Part shown: piece by piece, positions 1,840-17,822 of the stretch | Layout: every line of letters begins with the position of its first letter | How positions within the stretch are numbered: position 1 is the stretch's first letter | NCBI GenBank assembly: GCA_020536535.1 | Contig: JAHLWZ010000823.1 | Location: 1-64,000 of the forward strand | Length of the DNA stretch: 64,000 nt | Source: Pelomyxa schiedti | Taxonomy: Eukaryota > Protista > Evosea | Reading direction: 5' to 3' | Translations under genes and position numbers: made by a program | Notes under the pieces: model-generated | Databases searched by the model: none | What the model was told of the DNA's origin: nothing | The model's input: only the letters and a program-made list of their open reading frames with translations

Positions 1840-2063
1840 TTCGCAAAAGGGAAAAACGAGGCCGAACTGGATCAGGCGAAGTGGCACCTTGTGATTCTCA
1901 ATGACTCGGGGCGGAACGTAAGTGTGTCTGTCCCACGTTGTGTGTGTGTGGGGCCACCTCGTGAATCAGGTGGATAATACGTGGGGGGTGGGGGTGAGGG
2001 GAAAAAAAAAAAACTTGCTGAACCATTCAAACGAATCGAAAGACGAGGCGATGTGGAAGGGAA
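1820..2063 (-). repeat. Right arm of the inverted repeat; contains the upstream region and start codon of the 562-1839 gene
   Basis: Reverse-complement match to 197-433. Confidence 0.93.
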
Positions 2064-2198
2064 ACACAAGCGGATGACCGAAGTGCACTGCCCAAGCGGA
2101 GCACAAGGCCCCCCATGGTTGGATTTATTCGCGTCACCCTGGTAGAGGCCCCACTCCAGGAGTTTGTGTGAAGAGCTGCAGAACGTTTTGGCCCCCCT

Positions 2199-2250
2199 CC
2201 CGCCACCGCCACCGCCACCGCCACCGCCACCGCCACCGCCACCGCCCCCC
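2199..2250. repeat. (CCGCCA)n hexanucleotide tandem repeat
   Basis: Direct reading, ~8 units. Confidence 0.95.
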
Positions 2251-3061
2251 ATGTGTGTCTTTTTCTTTTTTTTTTATCAGTGCTTTGTTGGGTTTGTTTT
2301 AGCACATCATTTGAGTATAACTCCTTCTGGGACGGGGCCCTATTGTGAGTTGCTTGTTTGCACGCGGTATTTTCCGTGTTAGAGTCTCAGCAAGGGCTTC
2401 TGTAACGTGAGCAGGTTCAAGGTGTCGCTTCACCCATAAGTATTGGATTGCCGAGATTTTTTCCTTAAAAGTCCGGATTCAGAGAGCATTCTCTTGGAGT
2501 GCACTTAAATACAAATCAAAACAATGAGCTCTGGTGATACTTCGCTTTGGGTGCGGGTGGCCCAGGTCCGATTCCTGGCGAAGGGGAAAGTCAAATCCTC
2601 TTCGTGGTTCAGTGGCAGAATACCTTCGTTTCACCAAGCGCAGCCACTCCGTTAATCATTTTTTTCCCCTTGAACCCCATAACAAAGCGATCTGGCCCTG
2701 GCCCACCACATGTTTGTTTCTTCTCTTTTTATTATCCTTTCCACTGACGAACCAACGCAGGAGTGGGCAAAAGAAAGAAAAAGTACTTACTTTGCCAATT
2801 AACAAATCTAGACCTGATGGTGTGTGCCCAAAAAAGATCCTCAAATGTCCCAAGTGCAACGCTTCTGGACCGCACTGTGTTCTTGAATCTGTGCACTGTG
2901 GGCACACCCACTATGACTGTGTACTATTTGCAATTTGAGTTTGGGATGTATTTCCCGTAGAGGCAATGCATTTCAGCAGCAGTATGTAGCAATGGCTAGG
3001 ACAAACCGACAGCGACATGTTCGCTCTTCTTTTTCTAAGTGGATAATGCATATCTGGAGCC

Positions 3062-3447
3062 CAGGGGCGGTCATTTTACATAGAGGAAAAACCACATGAT
3101 GTAATTTAGGGCGGTAACCTATCATTTCCTGTGTAAAATGACCGCCCAGGGGCGGTCATTTTTCACTTTGTATCCTGCAGTCAAAAACTCCAACCAGAGG
3201 TCCCACAGAGTGTTGAACAGGTTAAAAAAGTGTTTCCCCCCATTTTCCAGCCGTCGGTGCCCATGACAAGGCTCTCAGACCCATCGGTCATCAGTTCTCA
3301 GAAAAAACTCCGAGAGAAATCGTAGTGCCGGGAAGCCACCGTTGTGCAGGACAACGTAAGGTGGACATGCCGTGCAGCCGACTGGTATCTCGGCTGTGGG
3401 GTGGAGTTTTTGACTGCAGGATTCAAAGTGTAAAATGACCGCCCCGG
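3062..3447. mobile_element. Two abutting MITE-like elements (3062-3147 and 3147-3447) sharing the terminus CAGGGGCGGTCATTTT(A/T)CA
   Basis: ggggcggtcattttaca...tgtaaaatgaccgccc (short element); ~45 bp TIR ggcggtcatttttcactttgtatcctgcagtcaaaaactcca vs tggagtttttgactgcaggattcaaagtgtaaaatgaccgcccc; no clear TSD. Confidence 0.8.
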
Positions 3448-3597
3448 TTTTTGTTTCTGCCGTGGGAGGAAAAATAATTTGTTTTGTTGATCATAGTAGA
3501 CTAGTTCACAATTTTACTTTGGCACCAAGACTTCTGACGCCGTTCAGCTTTCCGCAACTTGGCATTAGCTTTAGAACTGCTATTCTAAGCGTCACTC

Positions 3598-3787
3598 ACT
3601 CACACTTTTTGGCATCAATGGGGCAGAAAAGGGACTGGTTCTCTGTACCCTGTGAAGGGAAAATTCTGAAATCTCTGGACCACATCTGGACCAGACACGT
3701 TCTACCGTGTCGTGGTCTTTCCAGCGTCTGAGGAGCACCACATGGCAAGATCCAAAGACCCAAAAAATTAAAAGTGTGAGTCCCAAA
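3598..3787. mobile_element. Degenerate MITE related to the element at 62219-62802
   Basis: agtgtgagtcccaaa at 3773-3787 is identical to the right TIR at 62788-62802; actcacactttt (3598-3609) is inverted to aaaagtgtgagt (3770-3781); shared internal tctctgt(a/g)ccctg..aaggga and ctggacca motifs. Confidence 0.65.
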
Positions 3788-3807
3788 TATTCCTTTTTTT
3801 TTTTCCC

Positions 3808-6145
3808 TCACAGAGCCACATCGTCGATGAGGAAGACGCCGAACTTTGAGTCTGATGTGCCTGAGTTGTCGGGTGAATCAACAACGATGAGCTGGTTGGT
3901 TGATGGAATCCAGGAAGTCAACCTCACATACTTGCCAAATGTTGGGAGTGTGTTTCTGTAATTGTAATCATAATCACCAGTTGTGGTGTCAAACACCCCA
4001 TCGACCACCCCACAGGCGTGAGTGTTGCCAAAGTAGAACCTCCCACACACAACAAACGCAAAGCCTACCCTCCTCTTGGTGCGAGGGACAGTCCACGTCT
4101 GCAAGATGGCGAGGGAGTCGGGGTCCACCCTCGTGATGTGTATGTGGCTGTTGTCTGGTGGTGCGTGAAGCGCATACAGCACACCCCCTGCGTCGACATA
4201 CCAGCATGTGTCTGTGTCTCCACCCCAGTCCCACGCTGACTGGCCAGAGTAGCCTGCGTTTGGGAGTGGTGCAGTTGCTACTATTGACCCGTCACTCACA
4301 CGCACCTTGGTCATTGTGGCTTGGTTGTACGGGGTGCAGTAAACGTGGCCGTTGTGCACAGCCTGGTATGTGCCACCGGGGCGGTTGGGCATGCCCTTGA
4401 GTGTGAATTGCCTTGGGTTGGTGTTGTTGAGGAAGCTGGTCATGTTTGCAAACTCTGTAAGTTGCAGAGTGGCATAGGAACTGCTCCAGTAGACTTTTCC
4501 GGTTGTGTTGTCAACAAACAGCTTCTGTGCCTGACGGAATGTGGTCGAGGGCACCATCTGCCCAAGTTGTTTGAGCTCCCTCATTGCTTCGGGAACAAGG
4601 CGACCAAGTGATGAAATTGTTCCACAAACGGCAGTTGAGTCACATTCAAATCTCACCTGTTTGCATTTTTTGTGTCATTTTACATTTTTTTTGGATGTGG
4701 AAAAGAGATACCTTCAATTCATTTGGTGCTGGAGAGTCATTCTCGGCACCTGAATCGCAAAGGTTTTTGACACGAGAAGTGAGAGTGTAATTGACAGCCA
4801 CGAGTTGGAGGTCAGTGAACCTCATGGTTGCCTGTTGTGCGTATTCTTGTGCTTCTTGTGCATCCTTCATCTTGTTGTCGCATTCATCGATGTGTTCTTG
4901 GAATGTCTTGAAGGGGTGAACACATTGTCAGTGTGTGATTGGCGTAACAGACAAGTTCCTACCTTTTTCGCAGTTTCGGTGATTGTCTTCAGTTCTGAGA
5001 GCATCAATGCCTCCCTGGAATTGACAGCTGCAACAATCTTGGCAAATTCAGTTCGTATCTCTGCTTCAACTTTCTCTGAAACTTCATCTGCGTTTTTGCA
5101 GCATCCCTTTTGGGTTTTTTTTAGTTGTTGTTGTCGAATTGGGAGAAAACACAATTGCAGTGAGTTTTGAAAGTGAAAGCTTCTCCAAACACGATGACAA
5201 CTTGGAGCACAGTGAGGCAATGTTCTCCTTGAACTTGGAGCTCAGGTCAGAGGAAAACACAAAGTCGTGATTCTTGTGGTCAATCAATCTGATAATTGTG
5301 TTAGTTTGTAGTTGGAAACAACCCGATGACGCAACAGGTCCCAAATCAGAAGAAAAAAGAAAAAGGAACACACACGTGCAATCACGGCAAATCAGAGACT
5401 TGTCAGTGTTGCAGTACCACCGCAGTTCCTCATGTGGATGCTTGGAACAAAGTGCTGGTTTGGGTTCCGCGGGTGTGACACTCGTCTGTGTCCTGATTTG
5501 ATCCACAGTCACAACCTGCATTCGACGTAGTGTGAATGATTTAGTTGGTGGAAGCAGCTAGCTCTAAATAAACACTACACTACATTGTGGGAGGCAGTCT
5601 TCCTCGCACGTGAGTGGTGTGCCTTGTCATCAGCACACAAGAACGCCCCGCACGTTGGGCACCACCACGGCACGTCGTGTGATCCGCACTCGACGCACTC
5701 GCGCGGCGGCGCGGCAGTCGTCGTAGTGGTCCCTGGTTTGTGTGTCCCGCCCTCGGCAACAAGTGGAGCCAGGTCCAACAGGTGGCACTTCCAAAGGTCG
5801 ACAGGGAACCCCCCTTGTGGAATTGCGGCCTGTCGATAGGTTGTGTTGAATGACTGTTTGTTTATTGGTAAGTAAAGGCACAGAGAGGGACCTGGAATTG
5901 GCACACAGGGCACCTCACTGACGATGGCGACGATGTGGCGGGGTTCCTCGCTGAGGGGAGCTCGCCTCGTGAACATAGAGTGATACATTCGAGGCACAAA
6001 CTGTGCAAACACGGCAGTAGCCTGACGGTGGGGTGAGTGCGAGGGTAATTTTAAAGTTCGGGCCGGGAGTTGTTCACCTGGGGTCGCGGAAGAACGAGGA
6101 GCAACACGGGCACGTTATTGGCGCTGTCACTTCCCTCTTGTCCAT
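3808..6145 (-). CDS. TRIM/RBCC protein (RING-HC, two B-boxes, coiled coil) with C-terminal olfactomedin domain; multi-exon
   Basis: RING CPCC..LPCLHSLCLEC..RCPVC; B-box1 CVECGSHDVPWWCPTCGAFLCADDKAHH; B-box2 CSKHPHEELRWYCNTDKSLICRDC..DHKNH; last exon LPNAGYSGQSAWDWGGDTD..VD..ITRVDPDSLAILQTW..AFVVCGRFY matches the olfactomedin pattern. Confidence 0.88.
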
Positions 6146-6943
6146 GAGAGAAAGTTGGCTGAATAAAATAATCAACAGACCGGAACGCTTCAATTTTCGT
6201 TTTCGAGTCAGTGTTTTGGGAAAGTTCCCAGAAGGGAGTGATGAGGCCTCAATCAATCCCTTTGATTATTCCTAGAAGGAGCCTTTTCTTTACCTCAAAA
6301 CTATGTGACTTGTAGTCAAAGCACCTGGTCACTGATTGAAGAGTCCCGCATGCGGGAATCAGGTGCGCGACGGGAATCTTTCTCCCAAAACGCTCCCGAA
6401 CCCTCCCAAAACGTTAAAAAAGTTGGAAATTACAGCACTGATTCAAGAGACAGATCAAATAGCAATCAGGCTGGTAGACAAGGCTAACAACCAATAGCTT
6501 AGAAGAGAATAATAAACTCGTTTGAAGACAAGGCGGTTTTGTGATTAGTGAGGTGACAGGGTGCAACAGCACCACAATCCACATAAGAACAGCCTCGTTA
6601 AAGAAGAGTTTAGAAAGGCGGATAGAAATCGAACGAGAAGGAGTGCGGTGTGTGAGTTCTAATCCTTGTTTCCGGTGCGCCACAACCAGCAAGAAAAAAA
6701 GAATCTGGTACGCTACACGACGCTCGTAATAGCGACTTAGCTTTTCCTTCACAAGACCAAATAACTCAAACGCAACAATAGTTTATTCACCACTCAATTA
6801 GTCAACCAATTTAACGACCATTGTGATCTCGTTGAAACGGAGATCTTATAAATGCTACGCAGGGGAATGGTGCCAAAGGTGTCAAGCTTAGCTTTGGTGA
6901 ATCTCTTGCCATTCTAATCCCGCGATCTAAAGTCTATCTCACT

Positions 6944-8132
<1,189 letters not shown>

Positions 8133-11428: not shown

Positions 11429-14400
11429 TCAGGAGCTGGACTGCAAAGCACCCTCCAGAGCCCTGAGGGTCTCGGTGGCACCATTCTTGTCCAGAATCGA
11501 TCTGATCCTGGCCTCATTGGAAGCAAGGTGGGCACGCATCCAGACGAGAGAATTGGCAACTACTTCGGGTGGGACTGTTGTGGATTCGGCCGGCGCCGAT
11601 GTGTCCGGGATGTTGGCTATTTCATCCATCCAGTCGTTCATATCCGGAAGGCTTCGGGCTATGAATTCGTTCATGTTTTTCATGAAGGGCTCCTTGCCGC
11701 CAAATAGCACTGTTTTGAGTTATTGGGGATTATTGTATTTTGGTTGTTGGGTGTGGGAGTGAGAGGACGAGTAGAGGAAAGAAAGGAAATGGTTACCTCC
11801 GTTCGCAAGGTTTTGAAGAACTTTGCATAGAAGTACAAGTTGCCTCTGTAGTCTTGGAGTTGGTGGTGCCTTGAGCAAGGCATAGACATGCGGTGATGTA
11901 ATAGAAGGACAAATCTGTGGCGAGGTTTAAGTGCCTTCGGTTTTTCATTCATTATTGGTTGGAAGTTACTCACAAAGCGCAAGAATACAACTCCTCCAAT
12001 AGCGATATGCGCAACATTCTCAACATCTGGGAACCTCTTTGTCACATTTTCTCGGATGCACTTTACAAGGTACCGCACTGTCTGCGGCATATCCTTATTG
12101 GATGCCATGATAGCAACCAAAAGGGTGCGTGATCTCTGAGCCAAGAGATAGGATTGGGCATCTTCATCCATCCCACCTTTCATCAGATTTGGATCGATTT
12201 CAAAATCAGTTCCAAGCATGGAGGCAGTATGTGTGCTGGAAACACTTCCATCTGTATCCTCCATCTCAACATCACCACTTTTTTGCGACTTCTTTTCGTG
12301 ATGTTTTTGGGCCCGGTCAGCTTGGTCAGCAAGGAATGCAATTTCACCAATGAATTTTCCAAGAGTTTTCCACAGATAAGGCACACCAACCATTTTACTG
12401 TAAGACCTGAACATTTTACTGGCAAAGCTATTTGCACGGAAAAGAAGATTCTCACCTTGCACTTTTTTTACCTCTTCTTCAATAACGCTTGATATAAGTG
12501 ACAGAGCACCTTGTGGAGAGGCTGCATGCAAATAAACAAGCGAGCTGGAAACTTTATCCGACTCTGTTGCTTGTGTCACTTCAAAAACAGCTTGTATCAT
12601 AGCAGGATCAAGCAGAATTCTGTGCAGCGGCTCCCAATTTGGAGCTTCATAACCCTTAGGGAGCGCAGTATTGTTTCCGTCATAAGAGAATCTGTTGAAG
12701 TCCGCGTGATCTTCGGGATCAAATACAAAGAGTGCAATGGAACGTTTACGAGAAATGACAATCAAACAAATAGAAATTCCTAACATAGCTGCCAGCAGAA
12801 CAACACCACCAGCTACTGAAGCACCTATAATCAAGGGTAGGTTTTTATCATCAGATGATAGCGATGGTTTGTATTCCAAGAATGAAAATTGCCTTGCATC
12901 ATTTGTGTAAGGTTTAGTGTCACGGAAGACATAAACATCATAAACCCCGAAAAGGGTGTTGTTGATAAATGGGCTCACAAAGGAAATAGCTTCTGTACTT
13001 GCCCATTCGGCATTAACAGTTACCCAATAGTCTTCAGTATGGTTATGAATCTTTTCTTGGCTATGCAACTTCACCTTATAATCAGTAGCATTGATGGCGT
13101 AATTCAAAGATACAGTCACAACGTCTCCACCAAGAGTGAGACCACTTTGGGGGGAAATTTGTGTCAAGTAGGGGCAAATCCGTGTTCCAACTGGTTCTAA
13201 TGGCGGGAGAGCAGTGTAAGTGCATGACATCATGTCTAAATCCCATTTGCATATGTCGATTCCTCTGGTGAAGCAGGAAGCACAGCTATTTACAGTTTCT
13301 GCGCCGCAATCAAGCAAGCTTACCTGATAGCCGTCATTTGAGGTGTCGCCATTGTCGTAGGTCACCCAGACACCACCGACTTGCTCTTGGAGAAGCAGGT
13401 TCGCACCTCGATAGAAAAAGGAGTGGGTTGTGCTGTCAATGTGCTCCAATTGAGGGAATGAACATGTCACAAAGGTAGAGTTATTAATTGCAGTTGCAGT
13501 CGGTGCTTCCAAGCCATCTTCGGTACTTTTGATTAAGGAACAGAGATACTGCTGCTCGGGTACCAATTCGGATAAGTATATGTACACATCCTGTGGTGCT
13601 GTGATAAGTTTTTTGTCTTCATGGTACATGTTTTCAACGCGATTAATCTTTGGGAAATCCATGGCTCTCCAGTCTGGGGCACAGTCCACCTCAGACGCAC
13701 ACTTACGGTTCTGCATACACCAAAAGCATTGTTCTTGAGGTTTCTGCTTACAGCTTGACCAGGACAGTATATCCGTTCCGTTTGGATATCGGCAACTGAA
13801 TACTGCCCAAGACTTTGCTGTTTCTGTATACTGCCTGACTTCAGTTCCGGTAATCACGGAAATTGAAATATAAACAGTGGAGACATTCGATATGGAAGAT
13901 AGACCTGTCGGTATGTAACACGCAAGTACCGTGTCACTTAGCACTGCAGCGGTTGAATTCAGAGAATTTCCAGATGAAAGCCCCCAGTTGCAAGAATATG
14001 TTGATGACGTGACAAAGTGCCACCCAGTACTGATCTCAGCACTTACGTAATCCAATAAGTTTTCAGCCGTGTAGTCCAATCCACTGACTGGGGAAAGTGA
14101 CACAATGGTAGGGCATGATGGTGATGTAGCATCAACTCTGGTTATACATTGCGGTATGGGATTACTCACCCACTGACAAGATCCAGTGCATGTCGTGCAC
14201 GAATGGAAGACACTGCACCCAGTGAAATTGAACGCGATAATGTCAGAGAACACTGAGTCTTCCACAATCGAATCGTTATACTTGAGTACCAGGGCGGCAC
14301 TCCTCCAGTCATCAGTGAGATTGAAGAACGGTGTGAAGCAATAGAAAGCGTTCAAAGATGTGTCCAACGATGCCATTGTGATTCCCAATAACCCCCAGTC

Positions 14401-16650
14401 ACAGAAGAAACTAACTGCGGCGGGAGGAGCCCAGCCTGCAGATATTTTAATTTTAGTTGGAACGGTCGCTGGTGCCGAAAGAGGGTAGACCGAAAGGATT
14501 GCCGGACATTGGAATTCTGTAGCTTCCCCAGCTATAGGACAAGAAACGTTGCAGTAGCTTGACAATGAGCACCAATTGCATGAGGGAATCCCATGACACT
14601 CTGAACAGGTACTAAAAAAGGAGCAGTTATCGAAAGCGAAGGTCAAGACCAATTTATCGTATAGAACCGCTCCATCGAATGTAGTGTACAGGGAGGCTTT
14701 TGTTTTTTCATATGCAGTGCCGCTAGGAAGACTTGGTGAAAGACAAGAAATTGTGGTTCCTCGAGCCACAGCGGATGTGTAAAACGAAGAGTTGGCAAAT
14801 TTCCACCAGCACTTTACAGTTACATTGGGTGATGCTGTAATATCCCCGGAAGTTGTGATATCTACATTCATAGGGAGATTCACTATTCCTGATGTTGGAG
14901 TGACCCGGTTGGGAATTGGACAGTTTGTTGGGTTTGTGATGACTGTAACCCCGTTTGCGGATGTCCAGTTAGCATACTGCGGATAGTATTTGTAGAAGCA
15001 GATGTTGTTGTATGGTGACCACCCACACAGAATGGAATCACCTTCAGTGCAGGAACTGCAAGAACGGTATTGCTCACAGCTTGCAAACTGGTACTTGATT
15101 ACAACAGGAAAGATGCCGGTTGCAAAATGGATGTTTCCAAGAAGTGAATAATATGTCGAATCAAAAAAGTACCCAGTGTTATGTGCAAGGCTATGCAGCT
15201 CATAGGCGGTATCAGTTATGCGTGGAGGTTTTGTCACGTAGTTAGCTGGATATCCATCTTTATCCGTTGTCGGAGAGGTGCCAATTGTCAAAGTTTCTTT
15301 TGCTTCATTATTTCCGTACACGAACTTCATAATGCAGTCCCCTCGGATATAGAAATAAACAAGCTTGTTGGTACCATCAGCAAAAATGACTACAGGGATC
15401 TTACTTAAGCCCTGATAGGTTACTTTATCTTCCGTGCTCCTAGTCCATATGACTTCCCCACTGAAATCTATTTCCATCATTTTCCCTGCGTCGGTACCAA
15501 CAAAAACGCGTTCATTAGGCACATCCAACTCAACGCAACTGATTTTGGCGGTGGCCTCACTGTGCAGAGGTTTAAAACAGTTTTCATATTGCCCTGTTGT
15601 TGAGGCGGCCCTAATGCAGGAGAAGTTGAAAAGCCGTACATCTCCATTGGCATCACCAGTGACCCCCATGCCATCCCTTGATTTCACCATCCTCGGTATT
15701 TGCAAGTTGAGCAGTTGCTCCTCTCCTGAATAACAAGTTGTAATAGTTTTCAACTTTGAAGAGTTCACAGTCCGAGGAGGGAAAGGTAAATTCTCGTGAT
15801 TGACGTAGGAATTGTTTGCAATATAGTGAGTGAAATTGGGGTACGCCAAATTCTTCTCAGCAAAGCCGTCGGTCCATACTGTAATGGGTGGTGTAACATC
15901 AGAACTTGCAATAAACAGTCTTGCCACCTCCCCAGTTGTTTGGCTGCTATTCTTGGTTTGGAAATACCATCCCAGCCCATAATCTGGCATTCCCTTCGCG
16001 CTGTACCCCCCATCACCTCCAGGCATGCTCTCCTTCCAGTCAGCCGTATCAAACACATATTCTCTCTGTGTCCCCAGAGCGCGAAATACAGTCTTGTCAC
16101 TTTCATTCCGCACCTCGAACGCCAGCAGATGCGCAAAAGCGGCGTTGGTGTGGTACATCCCCTGGTCATAAAGCCTGTACCTTACAATGGGGATCGGGGT
16201 AGAGGAATCCGGTTCGGATTCGAGTGACAGGAGAGACACAAAAGCACTATCAAAACCCTCAGGGTAGCCGTCGGTGTCCTGGTAATAGTAGGGCCACCCT
16301 TCATTGGAAATAAAGTGAACCCAGAGAGCCGATTTCGATAGCGGGTTCAGAGTGGTACTGAGAGTTTCCGAATCCAACAAAACTCCTGAGAGGTGGTTTC
16401 CGCACCAATAGCCGGCCCACATGGAAGTAGTTGTGAAGTTGTTGTTTGTTAGCGCAACGAAGTTTAGAACATGCGTATTCGACGTTACAACCGATGCTAT
16501 CATCCATATTGCTCTAGGATTTTTTTTTTTTTTTTTCTTAGCGATGGGTATAAGGCACAACCAGTTATGCGGTTTTTGTAATAGAGAATCTATTTCTTTA
16601 TTTCATTTGGGAAACGCACAAGGACGACAGTACCGCCAGCACCGAAACCA
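11429..16650 (-). CDS. Plexin-like single-pass receptor: beta-propeller-like region, 5 PSI-IPT/TIG pairs, TM helix, cytoplasmic RasGAP domain
   Basis: PSI motifs such as CEQYRSCSSC..CGW..C..CP and CSFFSTCSEC..CNWC; IPT PYLTQISPQSGLTLGGDVVTVS; TM LIIGASVAGGVVLLAAMLGISICLIVI-SRKR; RasGAP LFRANSFASK, IGGVVFLRF, KVLQNLAN, FGGKEPFMKNMNEFI; 5' end approximate (MVSVLAVLSS at ~16650). Confidence 0.88.
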
Positions 16651-16667: not shown

Positions 16668-17822
16668 TTGTGTTGCTTTTCATGGAAGCTGCAGTTTTAT
16701 CGAGATTCTGAAAAAACGAGCGACAACGAGAAAAAAATTGCAGCAGTGTCGGCAGCCGCTACTTTCAGTCTCCCCCACAGGCGCGCGCTTAGCAATTGTG
16801 GGAGGTGGTGGGTGACCTCGGCCAAGCAAGACCACGGCGTGTCGAGTCTGTTCGACGACGACCCCGGCACGTTCTGGCAGTCGGACGGCAGCGCACCGCA
16901 CTCCGTGTTCGTGGAATTCGCAGCCCCCGTGCGTGTGTCGGACGTCGCGATACTCGTCGACACCAACGACGACAACTACGCGCCGTCGAGCGTGCGCGTG
17001 CACGCCGGGCCCCTCGCGTCGGCGGTAGGGTCCCGCGTCGCGGCCGAGCGAACGGGCGTGGCCGAGGCCGTGCGCGACTCTGGGGCCGCGGGGCGGGGCT
17101 GGGTCGTGATCTCCCTGGCGACGCCGCGGGCGCAGTTGCAATTGCACGCGCACGCGCTGTTGCAGTTGCAGTTGCATATGCAGATGCAAATGCAACTGCG
17201 GGAGGCCCAGGAGGAGCGGAGCGCCGTGGGTTTTGTGTTCCAGATTGAGCTGGTGGCGATGATCAATGATGGGAAGGACGCGAGGCTGCGAGGACTGAAG
17301 CTTTTTACGCCAGATTCGGAACCTGAACCAGAAATGGGACTGGAGATGGGGCTACAACGCGAGGAAGAGGAGGAGGAATTGGAAGATGCTGCGACGGCGT
17401 TGGCCCATAATTCTATTGGGAACCGCGTGACACGAGCACAAATGACGCCCCTTTCCCCATTCAGCTCGCATTTAACTCCTATGTCTCCACTTCGTCCTTC
17501 TGGACTTATGGGAATTCCACCGTCTGTCCTCAGCCCCAGCCCATGTGGCTTTATTCAGCCCAGCACACCAACAACAAATGGAACGCCGTTTCTATTTCCA
17601 AACGGCACCACCACAGGCCCTTATACCTCTCTTCCACACAATGCACAACCACAACAGCCTATGTATTACCCTGCATCTGCAACTCCAACTGTAGTGCCAC
17701 CAACATCCAACATTCAAGCTTCTGGAATAGGGAGAGATTTAGTTTCCTCTCTTCTAGGCACCTCCATCAAGGGCACCTGGACTGACCCAGGTTTTGTTGT
17801 AAGGAATCAGTCCCTGAGGTAG
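16668..17822 (+). CDS. APC10: Anaphase-promoting complex subunit 10 (DOC domain) with low-complexity insertions
   Basis: WWVTSAKQDHGVSSLFDDDPGTFWQSDGSAPH..F..DDNYAP..NDGKDARLRGLKLF, plus C-terminal IR-type tail (..FVVRNQSLR*); exact start unclear. Confidence 0.82.
   Translation: MCCFSWKLQFYRDSEKTSDNEKKIAAVSAAATFSLPHRRALSNCGRWWVTSAKQDHGVSSLFDDDPGTFWQSDGSAPHSVFVEFAAPVRVSDVAILVDTNDDNYAPSSVRVHAGPLASAVGSRVAAERTGVAEAVRDSGAAGRGWVVISLATPRAQLQLHAHALLQLQLHMQMQMQLREAQEERSAVGFVFQIELVAMINDGKDARLRGLKLFTPDSEPEPEMGLEMGLQREEEEEELEDAATALAHNSIGNRVTRAQMTPLSPFSSHLTPMSPLRPSGLMGIPPSVLSPSPCGFIQPSTPTTNGTPFLFPNGTTTGPYTSLPHNAQPQQPMYYPASATPTVVPPTSNIQASGIGRDLVSSLLGTSIKGTWTDPGFVVRNQSLR

Follow-up and report, generated by a model that had tools for sequence, protein, structure and literature searches.

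The window analysed here is a stretch of 64,000 nucleotides from the anaerobic amoeba Pelomyxa schiedti (Archamoebae; assembly GCA_020536535.1, contig JAHLWZ010000823.1, positions 1 to 64,000), and our subject is a gene near one of its ends that is predicted to join the RING, B-box, and coiled-coil (RBCC) front half of TRIM proteins to a C-terminal olfactomedin (OLF) domain. On the minus strand, positions 6145-3808 read as a single eight-exon gene encoding 636 amino acids, from an ATG at 6145 to a TGA at 3810-3808 (Table 1). Splice sites were read off the sequence and then checked by a script, and searches were run exon by exon; for full-length analyses, the GenBank paralog P0001, whose OLF part is 73-75% identical, served as a stand-in. 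All introns are of the GT-AG type and 46-87 nt long, and every junction is in phase, giving one open reading frame. An alternative reading of intron 5 (donor 5191, acceptor 5087, 103 nt) yields a protein of 617 amino acids; we prefer the 636-residue form because the codons it adds show full-length conservation among the paralogs and because the GenBank model of P0001 uses the longer form. A preliminary description, made from the letters of this DNA, had placed a TRIM-OLF gene at 3808-6145, and these coordinates proved exact. The olfactomedin motifs it quoted are all present in the 282-residue open frame at 3808-4656 (minus strand), and the order it gave, with RING, B-box1, B-box2, and coiled coil preceding a single-exon OLF domain, is intact and repeated in about 15 paralogs. 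The genome of P. schiedti comprises 52.4 Mb in 5337 scaffolds, with 7.43 introns per gene, and its genes were predicted with Augustus and refined by PASA/EVM using transcript data (PMC8887013).

Table 1. Exons of the TRIM-OLF gene in the window and the tandem B-box-OLF genes of assembly GCA_003202625.1
Feature	Position	Strand	Evidence or remark
Exon 1: start codon and first RING zinc-ligand pair (C-x2-C)	6078..6145	-	Paralog tblastn, 57-86% identity
Exon 2: remainder of C3HC4 RING (C-x-H-x2-C-x2-C ... C-x2-C)	5892..6021	-	Weak Pfam RING matches alone, E 0.002-0.004
Exon 3: linker and B-box1	5584..5829	-	Cys/His pattern readable; paralog aligns with TRIM28 RBCC structure
Exon 4: first part of B-box2	5376..5515	-	PF00643, E 2.8e-7, 31 bits (cut-off 24.1)
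Exon 5: end of B-box2 (H-x2-H) and start of predicted coiled coil	5153..5288	-	Alternative donor 5191 gives the 617-residue model
Exon 6: predicted coiled coil	4963..5106	-	Alternative acceptor 5087; conserved in paralogs (tblastn)
Exon 7: end of predicted coiled coil and linker	4712..4906	-	Conserved in paralogs
Exon 8: short linker, predicted five-bladed olfactomedin propeller, TGA at 3808-3810	3808..4656	-	PF02191; AG acceptor at exon start
Tandem B-box-OLF genes (L041)	QFZN01006693.1, 116-2032 and 2215-4083		Contig 57% G+C

The C-terminal exon matches the Pfam olfactomedin family (PF02191) at E 2.9e-26 (93 bits; cut-off 23.9); no other family was matched. In sequence, it also matches the solved OLF domains of noelin (E 1.2e-22), myocilin, and latrophilin, with E values ranging from 1e-22 to 1e-11, as well as that of gliomedin. 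An AlphaFold2 model of the exon, built on a 67-row alignment (pLDDT 91.8, pTM 0.89), contains 20 strands in five groups of four, and all 50 of its 50 best Foldseek matches in the PDB are OLF domains (E 1e-20 to 7e-15, 16-25% identity), with TM-scores of 0.67-0.76 when normalised to the model and 0.57-0.84 when normalised to the matched chain. Both the sequence and the predicted fold of 3808-4656 support the olfactomedin assignment of the preliminary description, and, judged from its model, the C-terminal exon is a five-bladed OLF domain. An NHL or Kelch propeller in its place is ruled out, since neither family was matched in Pfam and every fold match was an OLF domain.

In the front half of the protein, all eight RING zinc ligands are kept (C12-x2-C15 ... 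C27-x-H29-x2-C32-x2-C35 ... C60-x2-C63 in the joined translation). The RING of P0001 reaches 21.7 bits against PF00097 (cut-off 21), and its B-box2 reaches 44.5 bits against PF00643; the B-box1 exon gives matches below the Pfam cut-offs (ANCHR-like B-box, E 0.0023; zf-B_box, E 0.0072; 18.5 bits against 27). Between B-box2 and the final exon lie about 150 residues of helix-prone sequence. Residues 20-293 of P0001 align with the solved RBCC region of TRIM28 (PDB 6h3a; E 3.3e-19) across RING, both B-boxes, and coiled coil, and shorter alignments link its front half to solved TRIM3, TRIM2, and MID1/2. The full-length AlphaFold2 model of P0001, based on five sequences (pLDDT 55.6), shows one helix at residues 209-320 and shorter helices after it, an arrangement like that of TRIM coiled coils.

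The same combination of exons recurs throughout the P. schiedti genome. A PF02191 profile search returned 23 matches at 22 loci, which sets a minimum of 22 OLF exons for the genome, and in exon-by-exon tblastn searches about 15 loci displayed the same collinear set of RING, B-box1, B-box2, coiled coil, and OLF, with 48-77% identity in the OLF part; at least 10 paralogs retain the RING exons. Copies of the family lie on at least 12 contigs, among them contigs of 467 kb, 164 kb, and 101 kb. The OLF open frame starts exactly at an AG acceptor (AG/GTGAG) in 15 of the 15 copies checked, and in those copies whose alignment runs to the 3' end of exon 7, the exon closes in phase 0 at a GT or GC donor, 26-94 nt upstream of the OLF exon. 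There is no start codon at the 5' end of the OLF exon, the first 24 codons of which are under purifying selection (pN/pS 0.27-0.43). Moreover, transcript-informed GenBank models fuse the parts, with RING, B-box, and OLF joined in P0001 (644 amino acids) and B-box and OLF joined in P0002 and P0152, and a separate HMM search placed ten B-box matches approximately 1 kb upstream of OLF matches on the same strand. The collinear loci, the invariant acceptors, the conserved codons without a start, the fused GenBank models, and the nearby B-box matches together argue that the TRIM and OLF exons form one fused gene.

Some members of the family show features of their own. In three paralogs (L024, L025, and L027), the donor of intron 7 is GC (AAG/GCATGT, AAG/GCACGT), making these GC-AG introns, a class that accounts for 1.59% of P. 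schiedti introns (PMC8887013). The copy on contig C867 (L038:2569-3726) carries its OLF domain in a single 385-residue frame with an unrelated 115-residue N-terminal part and no upstream TRIM exons; within the Pelomyxa OLF clade this copy branches off first, and this position would fit a stand-alone OLF gene predating the fusion. On contig C1061, two TRIM-OLF genes (L026/L028) stand head to head with their first exons 88 bp apart, an arrangement that implies a putative shared bidirectional promoter region. On contig C575 (L032), one TRIM front end is followed by tandem OLF exons at 1395-2285 and 2378-3281, the second of which is split between two frames. The P. schiedti GenBank protein P0004 (1061 amino acids) starts inside an OLF domain and ends with RasGEF, and probably represents two merged genes or a truncated copy.

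No signal peptide or membrane segment was found in the joined protein, the N-terminus of which is the RING and the highest 19-residue Kyte-Doolittle mean of which is 1.15; the preliminary description had likewise noted that a signal peptide is missing. The side-chain ligands of the OLF calcium site were located by means of the D-I-D, x-[AS]-F-x-x-C-G, and x-D-Y-N-P motifs of the noelin-like match, at positions which we take to be equivalent to D380, N428, and D478 of myocilin (myocilin numbering). They are occupied by C151, F199, and S248 in the window copy, by D (32 of 32), N (26 of 32), and D (20 of 32) in the animal-like rows, in agreement with the noelin alignment, and by N or C, aromatic residues, and S, F, or Y in the other non-animal rows. 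With no hydrophobic N-terminus or membrane segment and without the calcium ligands of animal domains, the protein is inferred to be cytosolic. The cysteine of the F-x-x-C-G motif (C204) is retained in most Pelomyxa copies and replaced by K, W, or S in three, and a second cysteine is found near the start of the OLF exon, where the N-terminal segment is poorly aligned and modelled at pLDDT <50.

To place the domain among its relatives, a search of representative proteins was used, which gave 243 proteins at E <=1e-3; domain context was taken from a Pfam scan of 57 proteins of 380-1100 amino acids among the best 150 of the 243. Most of these 57 proteins carry OLF in extracellular contexts (SUEL lectin, GAIN/7TM, noelin N-terminus, TSP1, ZP, and VWA, as well as bacterial MopE, Stig1, and Por-tail). 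B-boxes occur in three of the 57, two from Pelomyxa and one protein designated P0078, and BTB-BACK occurs in two, from Mataza sp. D1 (Rhizaria; P0016, EukProt) and from Logan contig ERR11260144 (P0017/L046). In these BTB-BACK-OLF proteins, OLF occupies the position that a Kelch propeller has in cullin-3 adaptors. P0078 and its tandem neighbour, located on a 4.2-kb contig of GCA_003202625.1 (Table 1), are intronless and comprise B-box1, B-box2, coiled coil, and OLF without a RING; P0078 is collinear with the Pelomyxa protein, and its OLF domain sits on a long branch elsewhere in the tree. The L041 protein was also encountered in several Logan runs (SRR23300979-86).

When one genome per GTDB species was scanned, OLF domains of the Pelomyxa type were found only in three metagenome-assembled genomes of Myxococcota (Polyangium, Polyangiales, and Baikal Myxococcales), at 38-39% identity, and a word-based, length-windowed protein search returned only Pelomyxa paralogs and one shark protein. 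In quick maximum-likelihood trees, the animal-like OLF domains form one clade (SH-aLRT 100), as do the Pelomyxa domains (100), which are sister to a group of Myxococcota and metagenome sequences (84), with the BTB-OLF protists next (93-96). Enforcing an all-eukaryote clade in an approximately unbiased (AU) test (36 rows, LG+G4) costs 21.4 log-likelihood units (p-AU 0.03), which is a marginal rejection obtained with groups partly named after a tree had been seen. As regards the horizontal transfer raised in the preliminary description, the survey and the phylogeny agree with it in that the nearest relatives outside Pelomyxa are Myxococcota and a single eukaryotic clade is rejected, the latter only marginally. 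The OLF domain has likely been exchanged between bacteria and protists, in either direction, and by its alignment and branching the Pelomyxa domain is of the calcium-free type common to Myxococcota, not of the animal type.

Among the closest 25 pairs of OLF exons, dS ranges from 0.07 to 0.38 and dN/dS from 0.35 to 0.63, meaning that the duplications are recent and the constraint is only moderate. The changes are unevenly distributed over the propeller: pN/pS is 0.79 in the 'top' loops (D-to-A and B-to-C), reaching 1.0-1.2 in four single top loops, compared with 0.25 in the 'bottom' loops (A-to-B and C-to-D) and 0.28 in the strands. Per-site entropy is 1.24 bits in the top loops and 0.51 in the bottom loops (Mann-Whitney p 2e-6). 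The faces were assigned by combining the order of the DSSP strands with the canonical rule for propellers, and are thus inferred rather than read from coordinates. Concentrated on what appears to be one face, the differences among paralogs show relaxed or diversifying change, short of proof of positive selection, and such a variable face would be consistent with a target-binding or recognition module.

We consider it probable that the gene encodes a cytosolic TRIM-type (RBCC) protein in which the OLF propeller serves as the C-terminal target-binding module. By analogy with established TRIM biology (TRIM-NHL and TRIM-SPRY), on which the mechanism is modelled, the coiled coil would dimerise the protein in an antiparallel manner, presenting two RINGs and two OLF propellers; a ubiquitin-carrying E2 would be recruited by the RING and B-boxes, and the target, bound by the variable face of OLF, would then be ubiquitinated, with different copies possibly recognising different targets. 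As to its origin, a calcium-free OLF domain, probably horizontally exchanged, may have been added to a TRIM scaffold that the amoeba already possessed, and the resulting TRIM-OLF gene would then have been duplicated. A parallel use of the domain is seen in the BTB-BACK-OLF proteins of Mataza sp. and one Logan contig, where protists set OLF on another scaffold associated with ubiquitin ligases (E3). The link to Myxococcota OLF and this parallel arrangement in Rhizaria suggest that, following exchange between bacteria and protists, the OLF propeller was adopted on more than one occasion as an E3 substrate adaptor.

Several observations weigh against this assignment. In the exon-by-exon search, the RING and B-box1 exons remain below the Pfam cut-offs, and the coiled coil rests on the TRIM28 alignment and a model of low confidence (pLDDT 55.6). 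The last RING cysteine is followed by Q in the window copy and by H in P0001, at a position which we take to be the Arg/Lys 'linchpin' of many active RINGs. The cysteine pair that is disulfide-bonded in animal OLF domains, where it ties the N-terminal segment to the F-x-x-C-G strand, is apparently kept in most copies, and three N-x-T sequons lie within the OLF exon; these features could be read as traces of a secreted past. Finally, the faces of the propeller were assigned from strand order and canonical topology, and no window clearly above 1 emerged from a sliding-window analysis of pN/pS along the OLF exon.

The TRIM architecture might also be maintained without ligase function, the protein acting as a multivalent scaffold or a selective-autophagy receptor that uses OLF to bind cargo and the B-boxes and coiled coil to assemble. 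The missing Arg/Lys after the last RING cysteine would favour such a role, if the residue matters in the way we presume. The RING-less B-box-coiled coil-OLF proteins of GCA_003202625.1 indicate that this core can exist alone, and some animal TRIMs are autophagy receptors (PMC5758549). The retention of all eight zinc ligands and of RING exons in at least 10 paralogs, however, argues for selection on the RING, and we regard a non-ligase role as unlikely. Considerably less probable still is that the OLF exon is a separate gene beside a TRIM-like gene ending in the coiled coil, or that the joined model is an annotation chimera. The copy on contig C867 demonstrates that stand-alone OLF genes exist in this genome, and a Met at position 34 of the OLF exon, in many copies, could provide a start, but this Met is missing in L027, L031, and L035, and a start codon is lacking at the 5' end of the exon, where an AG acceptor is found in each copy checked. 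A separate gene would also be hard to reconcile with the in-frame conservation of the 24 codons that open the exon, with the phase-0 GT/GC donor that closes exon 7 a short distance upstream, with the collinear exon order kept in copies down to approximately 48% identity, and with the transcript-informed GenBank models that join the parts.

The least credible explanation, which we hold to be extremely improbable, is contamination: the locus would then stem from an animal or some other eukaryote whose DNA had entered a single-cell assembly. Both TRIM and OLF are regarded as animal features, and the assembly was produced from seven micromanipulated cells and needed decontamination (PMC8887013). 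Contamination is nevertheless difficult to reconcile with copies spread over at least 12 contigs, including the three large ones named above, with seven introns that fit the published 7.43 per gene, or with close relatives in a library of 1.84 billion proteins that are all labelled Pelomyxa schiedti. It is also at odds with a Pelomyxa OLF clade (SH-aLRT 100) that lies outside the animal clade (100) and lacks the animal calcium site.

If the gene indeed encodes a fused TRIM-OLF ubiquitin ligase, its implications concern both the OLF fold and the TRIM family. OLF domains have been studied almost exclusively as secreted, calcium-binding animal modules, for example myocilin in glaucoma, latrophilin in synapse adhesion, and noelin. 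A calcium-free, cytosolic OLF domain on a ubiquitin-ligase scaffold would broaden the known roles of the fold, and the natural calcium-free variants are on offer for structural work. Two prokaryotes, the bacterium Ca. Syntrophus and the methanogen Ca. Methanoregula, live free in the cytosol of P. schiedti, and a third endosymbiont, probably a parasite, is enclosed in vesicles (PMC10579272); this makes the recognition of cytosolic prokaryotes an attractive idea. It is conceivable, although we consider it doubtful, that TRIM-OLF genes are diversified cytosolic receptors which recognise and ubiquitinate non-self or symbiont surfaces by means of an OLF domain captured from or shared with Myxococcota; if this were true, they would constitute an independent, non-animal, TRIM-based repertoire of cell-autonomous immunity.

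Other genes lie beside the TRIM-OLF gene in the window. Degenerate ubiquitin-like fragments on both strands (6914-7150) precede a polyubiquitin gene with at least three ubiquitin repeats (7175-8083, plus strand). A single 1626-residue frame on the minus strand (11680-16560) contains a plexin repeat (PSI, E 3.7e-9) and RasGAP (E 4.5e-20), a plexin-like combination in an amoebozoan, and a plus-strand frame at 16668-17822 carries an APC10 domain (anaphase-promoting complex subunit 10, E 7.5e-23).

Full-text literature searches returned no report of TRIM fused to olfactomedin and none of OLF in Amoebozoa, and the genome paper (PMC8887013) contains no mention of olfactomedin or B-box. The TRIM-OLF family is undescribed in the literature searched and is annotated in GenBank by automatic names alone ('Olfactomedin-like domain' and 'TRIM71'). 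Among known systems, it resembles in layout the TRIM-NHL proteins (TRIM71/LIN-41, TRIM2, TRIM3, and TRIM32), in which RING, B-box, and coiled coil are likewise followed by a target-binding C-terminal beta-propeller, but their propeller is a six-bladed NHL and not a five-bladed OLF, and the window gene has no NHL or filamin match. The analogy with TRIM-NHL drawn in the preliminary description is apt, as the P. schiedti genome also has a TRIM-NHL gene. This gene (L063, contig C892:15500-19800, plus strand) presents collinear RING-like, B-box1, B-box2, coiled-coil, and NHL-repeat frames, and a second candidate (L064) is located on contig C42. Of the solved structures, the RBCC region of TRIM28/KAP1 (PDB 6h3a) matches the front half best in sequence; TRIM28 itself is nuclear and ends in a PHD and a bromodomain, so that the scaffold alone is in common.

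With animal OLF proteins (noelin/OLFM1, myocilin, latrophilin, and gliomedin), the Pelomyxa protein shares the Pfam family and the predicted five-bladed fold. In contrast to those proteins, which are secreted or located at the cell surface and mostly bind calcium, it has no signal peptide, carries its OLF domain behind RING, B-box, and coiled coil, shows its calcium positions occupied by C, F, and S, and falls outside the animal clade. The nearest non-Pelomyxa OLF domains are those of Myxococcota with cysteine-rich Stig1-like repeats (MSP62909.1; Polyangium and Polyangiales genomes), which are 36-41% identical and likewise have D-I-C for D-I-D and the second calcium position filled by an aromatic residue; they are bacterial, stand behind cysteine-rich repeats without RING or B-box, and most of them have N in place of the F-x-x-C-G cysteine kept in Pelomyxa and animal domains. 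The BTB-BACK-Kelch (KLHL) adaptors of cullin-3 offer another parallel, since an E3-associated N-terminal scaffold precedes a substrate-binding propeller, for which the protist BTB-BACK-OLF proteins use OLF; they differ in being cullin-3 adaptors and not RING ligases, and the OLF domains of the BTB-BACK proteins form a neighbouring branch of the tree.

The P. schiedti genome is also rich in B-boxes. More than 300 candidate B-box exons were found in its 52 Mb, and all 150 of the 150 scored matched at E <=0.01, whereas Dictyostelium is described as having just one TRIM, a TRIM37-like gene (PMC3503706, PMC5758549). Given this abundance and the TRIM-NHL gene, OLF appears to be one of several C-terminal classes placed on a TRIM scaffold abundant in this organism. 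On contig C966 (L047, minus strand), a frame with B-box1 and B-box2 (1851-4070) is followed by a Sel1-repeat frame (827-1825, E 1.1e-38), which may represent a further class. More than 300 B-box exons and at least two propeller classes, NHL and OLF, imply that large TRIM repertoires with swapped sensors are not confined to animals. Expanded TRIM families of vertebrates include the finTRIM of fish. Another, the vertebrate TRIM5 cluster (PMC6677749), resembles the Pelomyxa family in consisting of lineage-specific, clustered, and recent TRIM duplicates with variable C-terminal surface loops. In the expanded vertebrate TRIMs, however, the variable domain is B30.2/SPRY and positive selection has been demonstrated, whereas the Pelomyxa copies show relaxed constraint on what is predicted to be one face of an OLF propeller.

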